In this document: in pieces, positions 13,871 to 47,222 of the stretch
How the letters are laid out: every line of letters starts with the position of its first letter
Position numbering within the stretch: the stretch's first letter is position 1
Sequence record: KT919972.1
DNA: 64,000 nt
Direction: 5' to 3' (one strand)
Notes under the pieces: model-generated
Seen by the model: the letters and a program-made list of their open reading frames with translations, nothing else
Databases searched by the model: none
What the model was told of the DNA's origin: nothing
Program-made: the position numbers and the translations under genes

Positions 13871-14980
13871 ATGAAAAATCTAAAATCTTTTATGGAAGAA
13901 CTTCAGTTAGTCACTGAGGTTTTTATTCGCGGCGGGCGACCACGAAACGGCTCAAAAGTACTTGCTAACGGTAAGAATATTTGGGTATGGAATAACGATA
14001 GAGAGTTTGAACGTCTAGTGTCATTCATCAATCGCGAGTTAGGCACTGACTTCGAGGAAGAATACGATCTAGACGAATGGTATAGAGAAGGCGCACAAGC
14101 GGTATACGCGACGATTGAGAACGGCAGACTAGATATGTTCGGGGATTCTGCTTACCGACCGTCTGTAACGTCTGACACGCTTCGTAAGACGATCAAAGCA
14201 CTTAATCTAAACGGTGTAACTCGTCGCACGCAATCATTTAACCCTGATTACGATGAAGTTGAGCACGATTTCGAAACAGATCGATATGAATTCAACAAGA
14301 AACTGTCACAAAAGACGTTTTATCATGGCACATCGACAGCATACATCGAATCAATGTTGAAGTTTGGTCTGAAGCCGAACCCAGGCGAAACTCAATTTGA
14401 TAATATTGAACATGCTGATAAAGTATTCATTACGACTGAACTTGATAAAGCAATGTTTCATGCGACACACTCAGCGAACCGAAACAACTCGTTCCCTGTG
14501 ATAATCGAGATTCGTATACCAGACGAAAGCAAGCTTGTGTCTGATTATGACGTTGTAATTGATGTACTAGGTGCAAATTCAGAAGAAGCAAGCGAACTCG
14601 GTTATGCTGACATATTCTATCAATTACCACATCAACGCGGAGACGGGACGAAGTATCACAAAGATGATATTGAAAGTCGATTCGGCAAACGTCTGGGTGG
14701 GTTGAGTACTCGCATAGGTGTATTCGGGTACAAAGGTCGAATTCCTGCAAGTCATTTCAATTTCATCTACGCTGACGGTGACGTAATTGAAGAATCAATG
14801 CCAGAAATGTATTGGGAAATGGACGGCGAATTTGATATGGCAGAAATGCGCACTGAAACGGTAAACCATCGTTCGTTCGATTACTGGGACCAGTACAAGC
14901 CAGAGAAATTCATTGCTCACTTTGAAGAACTGTGGGATGACCTCGCAGATGAATTCGAAGACGAAGATGACGACTACTAA
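13871..14980 (+). CDS. late protein with an ADP-ribosyltransferase-fold (H-G-T type) domain
   Basis: FYHGTS...GL...VFITT...AMFHA...VIIEIRI; GAGG SD; CATAAATA late promoter at 13843-13850; N-terminus MKNLKSFMEE resembles a capsid-targeting sequence. Confidence 0.65.
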   Translation: MKNLKSFMEELQLVTEVFIRGGRPRNGSKVLANGKNIWVWNNDREFERLVSFINRELGTDFEEEYDLDEWYREGAQAVYATIENGRLDMFGDSAYRPSVTSDTLRKTIKALNLNGVTRRTQSFNPDYDEVEHDFETDRYEFNKKLSQKTFYHGTSTAYIESMLKFGLKPNPGETQFDNIEHADKVFITTELDKAMFHATHSANRNNSFPVIIEIRIPDESKLVSDYDVVIDVLGANSEEASELGYADIFYQLPHQRGDGTKYHKDDIESRFGKRLGGLSTRIGVFGYKGRIPASHFNFIYADGDVIEESMPEMYWEMDGEFDMAEMRTETVNHRSFDYWDQYKPEKFIAHFEELWDDLADEFEDEDDDY

Positions 14981-29912: not shown

Positions 29913-29940
29913 AAAAAAGGGCGCTATTTGCGCCCTTTTG
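29913..29940 (-). terminator. Rho-independent terminator
   Basis: AAAAAAGGGCGC-TATTT-GCGCCCTTTT (+ strand view). Confidence 0.8.
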
Positions 29941-30454
29941 TTTTTTGTTTCTTTGCTTTTCGTTTAGCTCGTCTAAGTTCTTTTCGTTTAGCGATTTTAT
30001 CTGCTCTTCGAACTGCGTCGTAATCAGCAGCACAAGACGCAGCAAACGCATCAGGTTTGAACACGGGCTCTTGACCAACATATCCCAATATAGTACCTTT
30101 AGCTTCGTTATAGGCAACGTGAGATTTGTGTGTGGGGTCAGGGTTGATGTCAACGTGAACTTCAAAGCCTCTAGTACCGCACATTGGCTTAACCATTAGT
30201 GCAGTTTCACCCGCTTTGTATACTTCATTCATCAATCGACTTCTGATACCATCTTTACATGATAAGTATGCAGGTTCAGTCTCAACTGCTTTAAACACTT
30301 GAGCACCTTTACTACCTTCAAGATGAATTATGATCACAGTCGCGTAACTAATCATGTCACTTTTACGCTTACTATCACACCCAACGTATATTGTGCTATT
30401 TGGATGACTGTTATTGATAGCTGTTTCTATCGCTTCCCAATCGAACATTTTCAC
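29924..30454 (-). CDS. RNase H-fold protein, YkuK/DUF458-like
   Basis: IYVGCDS...YATVIIIH...SRLMNEV...EVHVDIN...KP.AFAAS.AAD; basic C-terminal tail. Confidence 0.75.
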   Translation of the reverse strand: MKMFDWEAIETAINNSHPNSTIYVGCDSKRKSDMISYATVIIIHLEGSKGAQVFKAVETEPAYLSCKDGIRSRLMNEVYKAGETALMVKPMCGTRGFEVHVDINPDPTHKSHVAYNEAKGTILGYVGQEPVFKPDAFAASCAADYDAVRRADKIAKRKELRRAKRKAKKQKTKGRK

Positions 30455-30497: not shown

Positions 30498-31934
30498 TTA
30501 AAAACTGTAGCGTTCGACGCCTACAGTTTTCATCATGATCTTGATTGGCTCAAGCTCACCACCCAACAGTGAAGTCAAGATAGATGGGCTACAACCAGAT
30601 ACCAGTGCAGTACCCGCTTCACCAGCTTTAACCGGAACGTTGCCAAGACGACCACGAATGTTCCAGAAGACCAGTTGTGGCATTTCATAACCAGCACGTG
30701 CGTACTTGGCTTTGATTGCATCGAAGTTCGCAGGTTCACCGCGACCGTACCAACCACCACCAGTGTTTGCTTGATCGAATTCCATGTCACTCATGATAAG
30801 CAACTTGGTTGGCATATCTTCTTGTGAAAGATTTGCACGCTTCGCACGCTCTAGCAGAACATCAAAGCACTTACCGATGTTCGTACTCATGTCTTCGCCT
30901 GAACGATTCATGTTATCAAGACGCTCTTTCAATGAGCTACCGCGCAACTGGTGGAAGTGCGGGTCGCTTGAGAACGAAATGAATTGATCTTTGAAGATGC
31001 CTTCATTGCGTTCAGCAACATAAATCCCAAGAGACATTGCAACTTGCTTACAAGTCACACCTGAATGGTCTGTACCTGCGTTGATTGGCGTGCTCATAGA
31101 GCCAGACACGTCAACAACAGGGATGATGCGTTCATCAGAACCTTCCATGTAGTTTGGCAGAGCTTTCCATTGCTCGTTCGCTACAGACGCATTACCGTGA
31201 CTAACGCTCTTAACGACATCGTATGGGAACAATGCGCCAGCGTTGATCTTCGCTTCACCTTTTTGAAGTGACTCGATGTAGCTTGTGTAACGAGCTGAAG
31301 CGTTACGACCGAATGCTTGTTGATAACGAGCAGACGCTACAGAAGGCAACTTACCGAAGTCGATTGCATCCCATTTTTGCGCACACATCTTCTGCTCAAC
31401 AGTGTCAGACAGAAGCGACAGAATCTTACGCCACTGCTTCGCAGTCACGCCAAGAGACTTGATTGTGCGCTTGAACACATGACCGTTTTTGCTGTTTTCA
31501 CGTGGGAACCACTTCGCAGCAAGACCATTCTTGTCATTGACAATTGCGTTCGACCACATTGTAATCGCATCTTTTTCAAGACGTGTACCGAAAGCAGAAA
31601 TCAAGTCATCGTAACGACCTAGTTCTGGAATTTTCGACATTACAGCACGAGCTACGTCAGGCTGTTCATTACAAAGTTTAGTGAATAGAGTACGGAAAGT
31701 ACCACGTTCACCCGCACCACCTCGAACATCACGAGACCACAAAAGAATGCGAGTCGCTAGTTCTGGGTTTTCTGCAAACGCACGACCGAACAGTGTTTTA
31801 GACTGATCGTTGCCACGCATAGCAGCAATACCGAAGAACAAGTTTAGACACTCGTTACCTGAAGTGCTGTGAGTAACTGCACCGTTTGCTGTGCGTGAAT
31901 CGTTTGTTTGCATTGCGTTCATAAATACTGACAT
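30498..31934 (-). CDS. DUF2828 family helical-domain + vWA protein (Ro60/TROVE-like architecture)
   Basis: RDVRGGAGER, GRYDDL, AAKWFPRE in the helical part; vWA MIDAS DVSGSM, LLIMSDMEFD, LVFWN. Confidence 0.88.
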   Translation of the reverse strand: MSVFMNAMQTNDSRTANGAVTHSTSGNECLNLFFGIAAMRGNDQSKTLFGRAFAENPELATRILLWSRDVRGGAGERGTFRTLFTKLCNEQPDVARAVMSKIPELGRYDDLISAFGTRLEKDAITMWSNAIVNDKNGLAAKWFPRENSKNGHVFKRTIKSLGVTAKQWRKILSLLSDTVEQKMCAQKWDAIDFGKLPSVASARYQQAFGRNASARYTSYIESLQKGEAKINAGALFPYDVVKSVSHGNASVANEQWKALPNYMEGSDERIIPVVDVSGSMSTPINAGTDHSGVTCKQVAMSLGIYVAERNEGIFKDQFISFSSDPHFHQLRGSSLKERLDNMNRSGEDMSTNIGKCFDVLLERAKRANLSQEDMPTKLLIMSDMEFDQANTGGGWYGRGEPANFDAIKAKYARAGYEMPQLVFWNIRGRLGNVPVKAGEAGTALVSGCSPSILTSLLGGELEPIKIMMKTVGVERYSF

Positions 31935-40254: not shown

Positions 40255-40260
40255 GTAACT

Positions 40261-40375
40261 GAGTGTTATTACTAGCGTCGTCCAGACCAGTGATACCGAC
40301 ACTGAAGAGGAATCGAACCTCGAACTTTTCTTTTCATCAGAAGAATATTAGTAAATTGTTTGCTGAAAACACTCT
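40261..40375 (-). ncRNA. circularly permuted tRNA-mimic (YrlA-like) RNA
   Basis: closing GAGTGTT/AACACTC + TCAGCAA; then T arm GAGG-TTCGATT-CCTC, looped acceptor-like stem CAGTG/CACTG, GG-containing D-like hairpin. Confidence 0.65.
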
Positions 40376-40383
40376 ATGGTATT

Positions 40384-40457
40384 TGGCTGGGGATAACAGA
40401 TTCGAACTGATACCAACGCATTCAAAGTACGTTATGCTGCCTTTACACCAATCCCCA
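40384..40457 (-). tRNA. tRNA-Gln(TTG)
   Basis: T1-A72, loop CT-TTG-AA, G73, CCA. Confidence 0.92.
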
Positions 40458-43327: not shown

Positions 43328-43443
43328 TGGTAGTCGGGGCTGGATTCGAACCAGCGACCACGTGCTTAACAGGCAATTGAAGGAGTGCTGGAGCGATACT
43401 TGTCAGTATCATTCTTCGTGCTCTACCACTGAGCTACCCGACT
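43328..43443 (-). ncRNA. tRNA-Asn(GTT) body with a 41-nt structured insertion at position 28/29
   Basis: removing 43376-43416 gives a regular 75-nt cloverleaf with CGTGC-CTGTTAA-GCACG and CCA. Confidence 0.8.
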
Positions 43444-45330: not shown

Positions 45331-45455
45331 TGGAGGAGAGTACGGGATTTGAACCACGTGACAAAAAGATTTACCTAGTTATTAAGGTTTGCAGCATGAA
45401 TGCTTGTCAGTATTCTTTAACATTCTTTTGCTCTACCAGACTGAGCTAACTCTCC
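45331..45455 (-). ncRNA. tRNA body with the anticodon loop replaced by a ~54-nt module
   Basis: GGAGAGT acceptor, D arm, AAAGA/TCTTT stem enclosing GAATACT-GACA-AGCATTC-ATGCTGCAAA, T arm, TCCA. Confidence 0.7.
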
Positions 45456-45461
45456 AGAATT

Positions 45462-45580
45462 TGAAGGTGAAGTGCAGGACTCGAACCTGCGACCTCCGGC
45501 GTGCATGTGAATGCAGAATGAAATCTTATCAGACTTCGTTTTTTTTGGCCGGCATTCTAACCAACTGAACTAACTTCACC
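45462..45580 (-). ncRNA. Asp-like tRNA body with the anticodon loop replaced by a ~47-nt module
   Basis: D arm GTTC-AGTTGGTTA-GAAT, CCGGC/GCCGG stem enclosing GAAGTCT-GATA-AGATTTC-ATTCTGCAT; no CCA. Confidence 0.7.
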
Positions 45581-45594
45581 AATGTAAAAACATA

Positions 45595-45719
45595 TTGAGC
45601 AGGGTGCAGGATTCGAACCTGCGTCACGATCTTGGAAATGATATGCTAAATTGATTGCAGAATACAAACTTAACAGCTTGCGTTTATGCTACGTGTGCTA
45701 GCCACTACACCAACCCTGC
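45595..45719 (-). ncRNA. Gly-like tRNA body with a 49-nt insertion at position 28/29
   Basis: GCAGGGT acceptor, U73, residual loop ATTTCCAA; insert holds a hairpin + ATTCTGCAA; 17-bp extended acceptor duplex. Confidence 0.75.
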
Positions 45720-45793
45720 TCAATATGTTCTTGAGAGTGCTTGTGATTAACCACAAGCACCAAAAATCCTCTAGTTATATTTGCCTTAGCTAA

Positions 45794-45952
45794 TCAACAC
45801 AACCTGAAATCGTGCGCTTTATTTACGGGATGAATGACCCGTTCGCATATGATTAGCGCAAAAGTATGAATGCGCACCTTTTCTTCTTCAATGTCCAAGG
45901 CAAAGAGGACGATGAATACTAGTGCGAGAAGATATACAATCAAATTGTTCAC
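45794..45952 (-). CDS. possible small membrane protein
   Basis: GAG SD + GTG start, hydrophobic N-terminus. Confidence 0.4.
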   Translation of the reverse strand: MNNLIVYLLALVFIVLFALDIEEEKVRIHTFALIICERVIHPVNKAHDFRLC

Positions 45953-45976
45953 CTCGCTTGATAAGTGAGAGTACAT

Positions 45977-46099
45977 TGGTCGAGTGTAACGGAATCGAAC
46001 CGTTCCCACGATCTCCCTATGATATGCGTAAATTGGTTGCTGAATATAATCATGTCTGATTACAGTATGCTACGTGTGCTGCCACTACACCAACACTCG
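45977..46099 (-). ncRNA. Pro-like tRNA body (AGG) with a 49-nt insertion at position 28/29
   Basis: C1-G72, A73, CCA; loop AT-AGG-GA; insert holds a hairpin + ATTCAGCAA; 21-bp extended acceptor duplex. Confidence 0.75.
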
Positions 46100-46120
46100 A
46101 CCAATGTACTCTCGATATTT

Positions 46121-46259
46121 TAAATGTGCGCTACTTGCACGCCGACTGAGCGAATTTTAACTCAGCTAGTTTTTGATTGAGAATTCGTCCGCTAAGAGTA
46201 TCCCTGCACGCCAGAACGTATACTGGCTCCATGTATTCATTGCGGCTAACGCACATTTA
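46121..46259 (-). ncRNA. structured RNA with a long closing helix (variant GCCGCAA)
   Basis: TAAATGTGCGTTA/TAGCGCACATTTA, then GCCGCAA and two internal hairpins. Confidence 0.55.
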
Positions 46260-46266
46260 AAATATT

Positions 46267-46371
46267 ACTCATCTTCAGAGAAGAGGCAGAAACGATGAGT
46301 TTAGTCTGCTTAATCAATATTGTTCATCTTCAATAAGAGGCGAGAACGATGAACTTAGCTCGCTTAATCAA
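46267..46371 (-). repeat. tandem pair of ~50-nt pseudoknot-forming repeats
   Basis: two copies with compensatory stem changes, at the 5' end of the RNA-gene transcript. Confidence 0.75.
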
Positions 46372-46377
46372 CTGTGT

Positions 46378-46512
46378 TAATCTTAACATCATTTCAGTGT
46401 AAGTCAACAACTTTTTTTTCAAATATTTCATCGAGTTGAAAGTTTGTGTTCTGTCTCTCGACTCGATGAAATACATTCTACATGCTTTTCAGAATAAGTC
46501 AACAACTTTTTG
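46378..46512 (-). promoter_or_regulatory. tandem sigma70 promoters for the RNA-gene cluster
   Basis: two copies of AAAAAGTTGTTGACTTA followed by TAGAAT and TAAGAT -10 boxes, separated by a 13-bp inverted repeat (TATTTCATCGAGT/ACTCGATGAAATA). Confidence 0.75.
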
Positions 46513-46519
46513 AAAGTTT

Positions 46520-46774
46520 TTATACTGAAAGAATGATACCGCTTTCTGTCTCACCTCGTTCAAGCGCAGCGTGCTTGATTTGAAGCTGAGATACAGCTTG
46601 CTGAAGCTCAGTGATAGCTTTATCGTAAAGTTTGTTGTTCTCTTTAAGTAAAGCAATCTGATCGGTCTGCATACCGATGATATACGTCAATAATACAACG
46701 TTCTCTTCAGTAGTTAGAGTTTCGGGAGCTTCATTGTACTTCTTTAATACTGCTTCAGTAGATAAATCAGTCAT
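46520..46774 (-). CDS. coiled-coil hypothetical protein
   Basis: start overlaps the gp57B stop. Confidence 0.7.
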   Translation of the reverse strand: MTDLSTEAVLKKYNEAPETLTTEENVVLLTYIIGMQTDQIALLKENNKLYDKAITELQQAVSQLQIKHAALERGETESGIILSV

Positions 46775-47222
46775 TACTATCAACCCAATTTAAATCAAGT
46801 GGTTCAAGATATTCATCAACAAGCCGAACTTCAGCGTTGACGGACATAGGTGTGATCGCGTCGTCATAAGACAACGTAACGTGAGGGGTATAGTCAGGGT
46901 AGTCGTGAGTACCACCGATAGAGATAAGATCATCGTGACGTTCTACAAGTTCTGGACATACCATCTTAGCAACAACTGCATATTTGCCGTCTTGCGTTTT
47001 CCAACAGTCGATATGTTCAACAGTAGCAACGAAAGTGGTATCGACAACAGGTACATCAATTTGCTTACGACTATAAAGCACAGTCACGTGAAATTTATCT
47101 GGTTCTAACGGATTTTTTAGACGAAGCGTTTTCTGCAATCGAACTAACTCTTGCTTACTCGCCTCGTCTAATCTGATACCAACGTAAGTTCCCTGACTTT
47201 CAAGGAACTTAGATAGTTTCAT
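46767..47222 (-). CDS. acb1: 2H-phosphoesterase, T4 gp57B / anti-CBASS nuclease Acb1
   Basis: two HxT motifs (KFHVTVLYSR, YTPHVTLSY), WKTQDG and THDYPDY as in T4 57B; synteny 1-57A-57B. Confidence 0.9.
   Translation of the reverse strand: MKLSKFLESQGTYVGIRLDEASKQELVRLQKTLRLKNPLEPDKFHVTVLYSRKQIDVPVVDTTFVATVEHIDCWKTQDGKYAVVAKMVCPELVERHDDLISIGGTHDYPDYTPHVTLSYDDAITPMSVNAEVRLVDEYLEPLDLNWVDSND

Follow-up and report, generated by a model that had tools for sequence, protein, structure and literature searches.

Two tRNA-shaped RNAs with a hairpin module in a split anticodon stem, candidate partners of a Ro60-like protein in T4-like vibriophages

Bacterial and phage Y RNAs are tRNA mimics that are encoded on the same strand as the Ro60 gene and at most 4 kb from it (PMC4201824). 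The Ro60 protein of phage phiLo binds two adjacent phage-encoded Y-like RNAs and host PNPase (PMC12135203), and a ROT/TROVE protein, which in cells works together with a tRNA-like partner, is present in some jumbo phages (PMC7824862). Inserts in the tRNA genes of Lak megaphages have been called ‘enigmatic introns’ (PMC6784885). Here, we analyse two tRNA-shaped elements, E1 (45586-45732) and E2 (45967-46113), which lie in the tRNA cluster on the minus strand of a 64,000-nucleotide stretch of sequence record KT919972.1 (the window). The source phage, Vibrio phage phi-Grn1, is a T4-like Schizotequatrovirus and a relative of KVP40. E1 and E2 are very probably selected, non-decoding, structured RNAs. 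Among the explanations considered for their role, that of Y-RNA-like partners of a phage Ro60-like protein is ranked first, and a new protein-dependent kind of tRNA intron is the main rival.

Both elements were delimited by folding, inverted repeats and covariation. Each has a cloverleaf body (E1, 45598-45719; E2, 45980-46099) in which the D, T and acceptor helices and the conserved T-loop and D-loop nucleotides are present, and in each the acceptor stem continues into a long terminal duplex. The E1 duplex is of 20 bp; its 5' arm (45713-45732) comprises the acceptor strand and a 13-nt extension, and its 3' arm (45586-45605) spans the discriminator and the would-be CCA site. That of E2 (46093-46113 and 45967-45987) is a perfect 21 bp. 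As inverted repeats the arms are 95% complementary over 20 nt in E1 and 100% complementary over 21 nt in E2, and the perfect 17-bp helix of E1 given in an earlier note on this DNA lies inside the 20-nt repeat. As encoded, the discriminator and the bases that follow it are paired within these duplexes, leaving no single-stranded 3' end. The anticodon stem is split at the same point in the two elements, C27-G28 being parted from A29-U30-C31 by a 49-nt insert (45643-45691 in E1 and 46024-46072 in E2). The E1 insert contains a hairpin (45664-45681) and the tail AUUCUGCAAUCAA (45651-45663), and the E2 insert contains a hairpin with an A-U closing pair and a GACA loop (46046-46063) and the tail AUUCAGCAACCAA (46033-46045). 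The lower anticodon stem then leads to the 8-nt loop AUUUCCAA in E1 (45627-45642) and to the 7-nt loop AUAGGGA in E2 (46009-46023). Fold z-scores are -6.2 for E1 and -7.5 for E2, with none of 200 shuffles folding as well. The earlier note had described the pair as twin tRNA chimeras with 49-nt inserts at a common 28/29 point; this was confirmed, and the shared strings that it quoted are present as direct repeats. The elements are recognized neither by ARAGORN nor by the Rfam tRNA model, and GenBank labels them tRNA-Cys and pseudo tRNA-OTHER. Between E2 and E1, the spacer is filled by a 71-codon open reading frame (45794-46009, minus strand) that runs into the 3' side of E2; the KVP40 annotation places the coding sequence KVP40.0319 in this spacer.

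The region is contained in about 50 related Vibrio phage records at identities down to about 71%. Ten lineages were fetched and their orthologues aligned, and covariation was counted over 8-10 diverged orthologues (ten for E1) from lineages that are 71-90% identical. In E1, 99% of the pair cells form standard pairs and 23 of the 40 pairs have changed on both sides; in E2, 93.9% of the pair cells are kept and 21 of the 41 pairs are compensatory. These pairing values were reached by none of 500 shuffles, and controls with slid partners were only 25-51% paired for the two elements together and 32-51% for E1 alone. The 20-bp terminal helix of E1 is 100% paired in the ten orthologues, with compensatory changes at 13 of its 20 pairs. 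Between lineages the insert hairpin has been fully altered (CAAGC/GUUUG, GAUUC/GAAUC and AUCUU/AAGAU) with its pairing retained, and G-U pairs are preserved on the tRNA-sense strand. Covariation is seen in the cloverleaf and its split anticodon stem, in the hairpin of the insert and in the long duplex that flanks them. The view of the earlier note that the elements reflect selection rather than decay is upheld by these counts, which are the covariance comparison across related phages that it had named as a check, and erosion was not seen. Neutral helix decay among the orthologues, for which the same counts were inspected, was not found in E1 or E2, and decay is excluded because pairing has been retained through compensatory changes.

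The anticodon loops vary between the same orthologues. Six variants of the E1 loop were found (AUUUCCAA, AUUUCAA, AUUCUAA, AUUCAUAA, CUUCAAA and AUUUCCA), the E2 loop is AUAGGGA or, in phages F86 and D482, AUUAGGA, which amounts to a switch between AGG and UAG, and the 1-72 pair alternates between G-C and U-A. The claim that the bodies keep their tRNA identity elements was not borne out. A canonical tRNA has an uninterrupted 5-bp anticodon stem with a 7-nt loop, and an anticodon and identity elements that are conserved among orthologues; E1 and E2 have neither. Drift in both the anticodon loops and the 1-72 pair sets them apart from ordinary decoders. Translation would be closed to them by two features, namely the burial of the acceptor end in the 20-21-bp duplex and the splitting of the anticodon stem by the module.

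The insert is a module that recurs in three further genes of the window, all of whose tRNA genes lie on the minus strand. The first (43331-43443) has an Asn(GUU) body with the insert at 28/29, in agreement with the Asn case for which the same insertion point had been proposed. In the second (45334-45455), which has an Asn(GUU)-like body, the module follows loop position 38, and in the third (45466-45579) it takes the place of the anticodon loop on a tRNA scaffold. The Rfam tRNA model detects these genes with anticodon-arm inserts of 46-54 nt. Their annotations, tRNA-Val, tRNA-Asn and tRNA-Phe, respectively, are wrong; in the KVP40 record they are tRNA-Pseudo-3, -4 and -5, and the counterparts of E1 and E2 are unannotated. 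Common to the five window genes are a leader rich in A, a hairpin and, at a fixed distance, the tail NNNCNGCAAYC; the module is at 28/29 in three of them (E1, E2 and 43331-43443). RNAalifold applied to 19 diverse members returned the cloverleaf and a covarying 7-bp hairpin, the last pair of which also covaries (mostly U-A, A-U in E2) and leaves a GNNA tetraloop. A covariance model, R1, was built from 37 members; it scores the five window elements at 114.6, 104.4, 86.5 (43331-43443), 55.1 and 53.1 bits, and ordinary tRNAs at less than 50 bits. Inspection by eye revealed no conserved pairing of the leader with the tail or of the hairpin loop with another region. A target-site duplication, considered for the UAGCAU present at both ends of the insert, was rejected: removal of one copy gives no valid anticodon arm. 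In the gap between tRNA-Gln and tRNA-Thr (40255-40384, minus strand), an apparent degenerate module with a T arm was seen (an AAAUAC/GUGUUU hairpin, UCAGCAAAC and GAGGUUCGAUUCCUC), at which R1 gives no match.

In other genomes the module interrupts the anticodon stem on its 5' strand, at 27/28, 28/29 or 29/30. It is found in a CAU body and an Asn body, both with encoded CCA, in Synechococcus phage BUCT-ZZ01, in an Asn body with an extended acceptor duplex in Aeromonas phage Ahp1 and in an Arg(UCU) body in the 735-kb megaphage LR756501. Two module RNAs are encoded in the 233,234-bp isolate genome of locus L160, one on an Asn body with an 18-bp extended acceptor duplex and the other on a scaffold without an anticodon loop. 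An unrelated IMG/VR phage contig has a tandem Gly(UCC), CAU and Pro(UGG) trio with the module; the D arms of the trio are near-identical to those of E1 and E2 and the CG/UAGC junction matches, in keeping with the Gly-like and Pro-like origins assigned to the two elements in the earlier note. About 40 distinct metagenomic sequences bear the module, and the family has about 50 members. Among the bacterial matches, the module is present in one contig of a metagenome-assembled genome, and the other two genome matches are due to chance. A second class of insert has CUUAC instead of CAGCAA. Loops of 8 nt recur in unrelated lineages (AUUCAUAA, ACUCAUAA and AUCAUCAA), and some family loops have A33 or C33. 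The IMG/VR searches succeeded with patterns anchored on the D arm and junction; a generic module pattern returned mostly chance matches in coding DNA. Three further observations were made at these loci. In the metagenomic locus L087, a conserved 5' half and CG/UAG junction are followed by what appears to be a whole second tRNA. At L090 (958-1747), a truncated 5' half adjoins the Ro60-like gene and is followed by a TTGACA/TATATA promoter-like stretch. At L076, on a contig that also carries a module tRNA, a permuted phage tmRNA (1785-2202; Rfam, 127 bits) and the Ro60-like gene are 1 kb apart.

The most productive lead was a pointer in the earlier note to DUF2828, which led to a gene at 30498-31934 (minus strand) with Pfam DUF2828 and DUF7788 matches. 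An AlphaFold model of its product (mean predicted local distance difference test score 81.5, predicted TM-score 0.80) was compared using Foldseek and gave full-length matches to Ro60 with E values of 1e-8 to 2e-5 and TM-scores of about 0.5-0.6. The matched Ro60 proteins are those of Thermus phage phiLo (9kop and 9l5y), Xenopus (2i91 and 1yvp), Deinococcus (2nvo) and human; the remaining matches are confined to the vWA domain. A sequence search of the PDB with the same protein returned only designed repeat proteins, and a literature search on DUF2828 returned nothing relevant. Homologues are present in 711 of 50,697 phage records, some of them annotated ‘Ro-like RNA binding protein’. Gene neighbourhoods were established by local tblastn of the Ro60-like protein against the loci examined. 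In BUCT-ZZ01, the Ro60-like gene, a tRNA and then two module RNAs follow one another on the same strand with gaps of less than 100 nt. The same-strand distance from the Ro60-like gene to a module RNA is about 100 nt at L090, 3 kb in Ahp1 and 7.5 kb at L076. At L160, the Ro60-like gene is followed after 2.6 kb, on its own strand, by the module RNAs, with the ordinary tRNA cluster of the phage on the other side, and megaphage LR756501 has both a module RNA and a Ro60-like gene, far apart. Every module-bearing lineage that could be tested encodes a DUF2828 protein, usually nearby. Directly downstream of the Ro60-like gene of the window lies an RNase H-like DUF458 gene (29924-30448, minus strand); no DUF458 homologue was seen beside the Ro60-like genes in the other loci examined.

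Our first choice, which is tentative and draws on analogy, is that E1 and E2 may be Y-RNA-like tRNA mimics and partners of the phage Ro60-like protein. The genome encodes a protein with the Ro60 fold, both elements combine a terminal stem formed by the 5' and 3' ends with a tRNA-like domain, and the module RNAs of BUCT-ZZ01, L090, Ahp1 and L160 lie on the same strand and within 4 kb of a Ro60-like gene. The structure, conservation, anticodon drift, family distribution, protein fold and gene neighbourhoods were observed; we infer that E1 and E2 would be transcribed and stable, would bind the Ro60-like protein and would have a function downstream of it. They would be expressed as structured non-decoding RNAs on Gly-type and Pro-type tRNA bodies. 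The protein-binding platform would be the module that stands out from the anticodon arm, possibly joined by the long terminal stem, and the L-shaped tRNA body would be a second module that tethers or mimics. By analogy with bacterial Ro60, Y RNA and PNPase and with the phiLo Ro60-Yrl complex, host PNPase or tRNA-binding factors might be engaged, and phage Ro60-like proteins might use such RNAs to capture host RNA-decay or tRNA-directed machinery during infection. It is also possible, although we hold this more lightly, that the family constitutes a new class of viral Y RNAs in T4-like vibriophages, Aeromonas phages, cyanophages and megaphages, in which a complete tRNA mimic carries a Ro60-binding hairpin module in its anticodon arm and, in some lineages, has a sealed acceptor end. 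Such a class would explain the KVP40 ‘pseudo-tRNAs’ and perhaps some of the ‘enigmatic introns’ of huge phages. A true Ro60 link would extend the concept of Y RNAs as tRNA mimics to a new architecture and would offer a tractable system for the roles of phage Ro60 complexes, since KVP40-type phages grow on laboratory Vibrio strains.

Several findings weigh against a partnership with the Ro60-like protein. In the window, the Ro60-like gene is on the same strand as the module RNAs and 11-14 kb downstream of them, outside the 4-kb rule. The GNCGAAN0-1G/CGAA Ro-binding motif was not found in the stems or the module, and the terminal helices have no bulge. Rfam matches to YrlA (32 and 17 bits; threshold 69) are an artefact arising from a T arm and the D arm of the next gene. 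The association is one-way: a scan of 80 IMG/VR DUF2828 loci with R1 gave insert-bearing matches only at L097 (KVP40) and L160 and none in the other 78. No Ro60-like gene was found nearby in the rumen-type loci L045, L062, L080 and L092 (10-15 kb each), and the linkage may in part be inherited gene order, several of the linked lineages being T4-like phages. Single copies are dispensable, as E1 is absent from Vibrio phage TCU-VP03-AIR1 (locus L011) together with two sister elements (‘Phe’ and ‘Asn38’), and E2 was not found within the 6-kb locus examined in phage 1.081.O. In TCU-VP03-AIR1 a homing endonuclease gene (1971-2624 of L011) stands where these three would be expected, and E2 and the Asn 28/29 element remain. 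Finally, many members of the family have intact 7-nt anticodon loops (such as CUGUUAA for Asn in five lineages) and an encoded CCA, features that would better fit introns or anticodon-dependent recognition.

The main rival to the Y-RNA-like reading, which we consider rather unlikely, is that these are genuine tRNA genes with introns of a novel type that depends on proteins. An RNase III-type enzyme would free the precursor by cutting the long duplex. Excision of the module would then leave, in the 5' strand of the anticodon stem, a nick that a phage RNA ligase would close with the 3' strand as splint; some of the resulting tRNAs would have 8-nt loops. KVP40-type phages encode a nick-sealing ligase, Rnl2 (Shuman laboratory). 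Joining of the exons restores a covarying 5-bp anticodon stem in every case, conservation is seen at the 5' junction (the tabulated 28/29 inserts all begin with UA, and all but one with UAG) and the content of the insert is variable, at 39-55 nt among the tRNA-like matches. Canonical loops with U33, a purine at 37 and encoded CCA in many members also favour introns, as do the conserved 5' half and junction of L087 followed by an apparently complete tRNA, and the precedent of Lak megaphage tRNAs, whose ‘enigmatic introns’ have intron-less alleles (PMC6784885). In contrast, the anticodons and identity elements of E1 and E2 drift while all else is conserved, and some sister elements, in the window and at L160, have the module in place of any anticodon loop, so that splicing could yield no tRNA. 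Strong sequence conservation would be unexpected under structure-guided splicing. Intron-less alleles were not found for the module in IMG/VR, where one pattern gave no match and the other gave one chance match in coding sequence.

The known intron types do not fit. The inserts lack bulge-helix-bulge geometry, are far below the size of group I or II introns and match no ribozyme family. A group I intron was rejected because the insert is 49 nt long, versus about 200 nt or more, lies in the stem rather than in the anticodon loop and has no Rfam intron match; a group II intron was rejected on size, junctions and geometry. A bulge-helix-bulge intron was likewise rejected, as both junctions abut one continuous helix and the required pairing, with two 3-nt bulges on either side of a 4-bp helix, was not found on reading the sequence. 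Rfam searches over 42.6-46.6 kb, at the gathering threshold and with E values up to 10, returned only tRNA besides the YrlA artefacts, and no ribozyme, riboswitch or intron family. Set against their consensus sequences, hairpin, hammerhead and pistol ribozymes showed no convincing resemblance to the inserts. No candidate endonuclease was identified. The neighbouring gene 57B (46767-47222, minus strand), annotated as ‘RNA ligase’ in several relatives and in T4, was considered as the splicing ligase and discarded because its product matches Pfam Acb1, an anti-CBASS phosphodiesterase, with an E value of 7e-46. Were the elements introns after all, bacterial viruses would have a first case of tRNA splicing that depends on proteins, and the ligase Rnl2 would have a natural substrate.

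It is improbable that the elements act independently of the Ro60-like protein as decoys or sponges for tRNA-directed host factors, such as anticodon nucleases, tRNA-cleaving defence systems, modification enzymes or synthetases, with the module and the closed acceptor end barring translation or conferring resistance to cleavage. The tRNA core is well kept (T loop, D arm and L-shape nucleotides), and the loops of the family often match tRNAs that are known nuclease targets, such as Asn, Asp and His (GUN), Arg and Met. ARAGORN finds 28 ordinary tRNAs in the window, two of them normal Asn genes, so that decoding has no need of further copies. The anticodon drift of E1 and E2 nevertheless counts against anticodon-specific decoys, and a decoy role leaves both the conserved module sequence and the link to the Ro60-like gene unexplained.

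Directly upstream of E2 lies a third structured RNA, E3 (46115-46265, minus strand), which is not a tRNA; it was delimited by an inverted repeat, folding and covariation. Its 19-bp terminal duplex encloses a branched interior with two conserved internal hairpins, and in seven lineages 98% of the pair cells are kept, with eight of the 36 pairs compensatory. That three consecutive units with sealed ends head the cluster suggests that the E1, E2 and E3 duplexes share a role in processing or protection. The suggestion of an RNase III or RNase P role for the E1 and E2 duplexes is plausible, because E3 has the same kind of covarying duplex. Upstream of E3, E2 and E1 are two weak sigma-70-like promoter matches (46380-46502, minus strand; TTGACT-16 nt-TAGAAT and TTGACT-16 nt-TAAGAT) inside a repeated 25-nt box (46392-46416 and 46487-46511); the count of such matches at 46380-46502 is not above that in shuffled sequence. 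The stretch 46261-46527 also contains tandem repeats of about 54 bp (46281-46384) and a 19-nt inverted repeat (46424-46473). To judge from their sequence, the repeats in this stretch may be early promoters or operators of the RNA cluster.

That E1 and E2 chiefly serve the processing or stability of the early transcript of the tRNA cluster, with tRNA bodies that are exapted relics carrying a once-mobile insertion, is decidedly improbable. The terminal duplexes of E3, E2 and E1 would then be cut by RNase III or keep exonucleases away. Such a role agrees with the covarying 19-21-bp duplexes of three consecutive units at the start of the cluster, of which E3 is not a tRNA, with the promoter-like sites just upstream and with the substitution of a homing endonuclease gene for E1 and two neighbouring elements in one isolate. 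It would not explain why compensatory change has maintained the D and T arms, the split anticodon stem and the hairpin of the module, or the recurrence of the module in unrelated phages without the long duplex. Ordinary tRNA pseudogenes, as in the annotations of KVP40, phi-pp2 and phi-Grn1, would fit the pseudo or low-scoring tRNAscan labels (PMC5107563, PMC3468402) and the abnormal anticodon loops; they are scarcely credible and are refuted by the covariation counts, every helix having compensatory substitutions across lineages that are 71-90% identical.

The loci entered GenBank with the KVP40 genome in 2003 and have stood there since as tRNA pseudogenes or without annotation. The phi-Grn1 and phi-pp2 papers mention only ‘pseudo-forms’ (PMC5107563, PMC3468402), and in our literature search the elements of the KVP40 group were treated only as pseudo-tRNAs, with the module and the link to the Ro60-like gene undescribed. 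An oddity of annotation thereby becomes a defined RNA family of about 50 members, with its own covariance model and a specific protein as candidate partner, and the tRNA counts of such phages need correcting whether the Y-RNA or the intron reading is true. Elsewhere in the window, a gene at 13871-14980 (plus strand) encodes a 369-residue protein with a weak match to the PARP catalytic domain that is below the Pfam threshold (E value 1e-4).

Among known systems, T4 species 1 and 2 (rnaC and rnaD; 1409-1672 of locus L048) are stable RNAs of about 120-140 nt from the syntenic tRNA cluster downstream of gene 57B. There is no clear homology to E1 and E2; rnaC has a T arm, and in rnaD a hairpin followed by ACAGCAGAAAC faintly recalls the tail of the module. 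The protein-spliced introns of archaea and eukaryotes and the group I introns of bacteria likewise place an intervening sequence in an anticodon arm that the exons are able to rebuild; the module differs from them in its stem position at 28/29, in the conserved sequence inside the insert and in the existence of copies without a loop. By their published description, the Lak megaphage genes are similar as oversized phage tRNA genes that bacterial tRNA finders call pseudo and that contain highly conserved inserts, and a homologue of the DUF2828 protein is present in Lak phages (Lak-B9, in the search of phage records). They differ in having intron-less alleles, none of which was found for the module. 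The phiLo system, which gave the best structural match, shares a phage Ro60-fold protein and more than one phage-encoded partner RNA (PMC12135203); its Yrl1 and Yrl2, encoded immediately upstream of the gene, have a stem-bulge-stem form with CGAA motifs and are not cloverleaves with an inserted module. Closest in plan is YrlA (RF02553), which like E1 and E2 is a tRNA-mimicking non-coding RNA of about 100-150 nt with a long stem made from its 5' and 3' ends, and for which a Ro60-fold protein is also encoded, often close by and on the same strand. The window protein belongs to the DUF2828 branch and not to Pfam TROVE. The Ro-binding helix of YrlA departs from the tRNA-like domain at the place of the anticodon stem and the acceptor end is closed, whereas in E1 and E2 the ends lie on the acceptor side and the additional helix, which leaves at the same position, is a closed hairpin; the topology of E1 and E2 would then be a circular permutation of that of YrlA.

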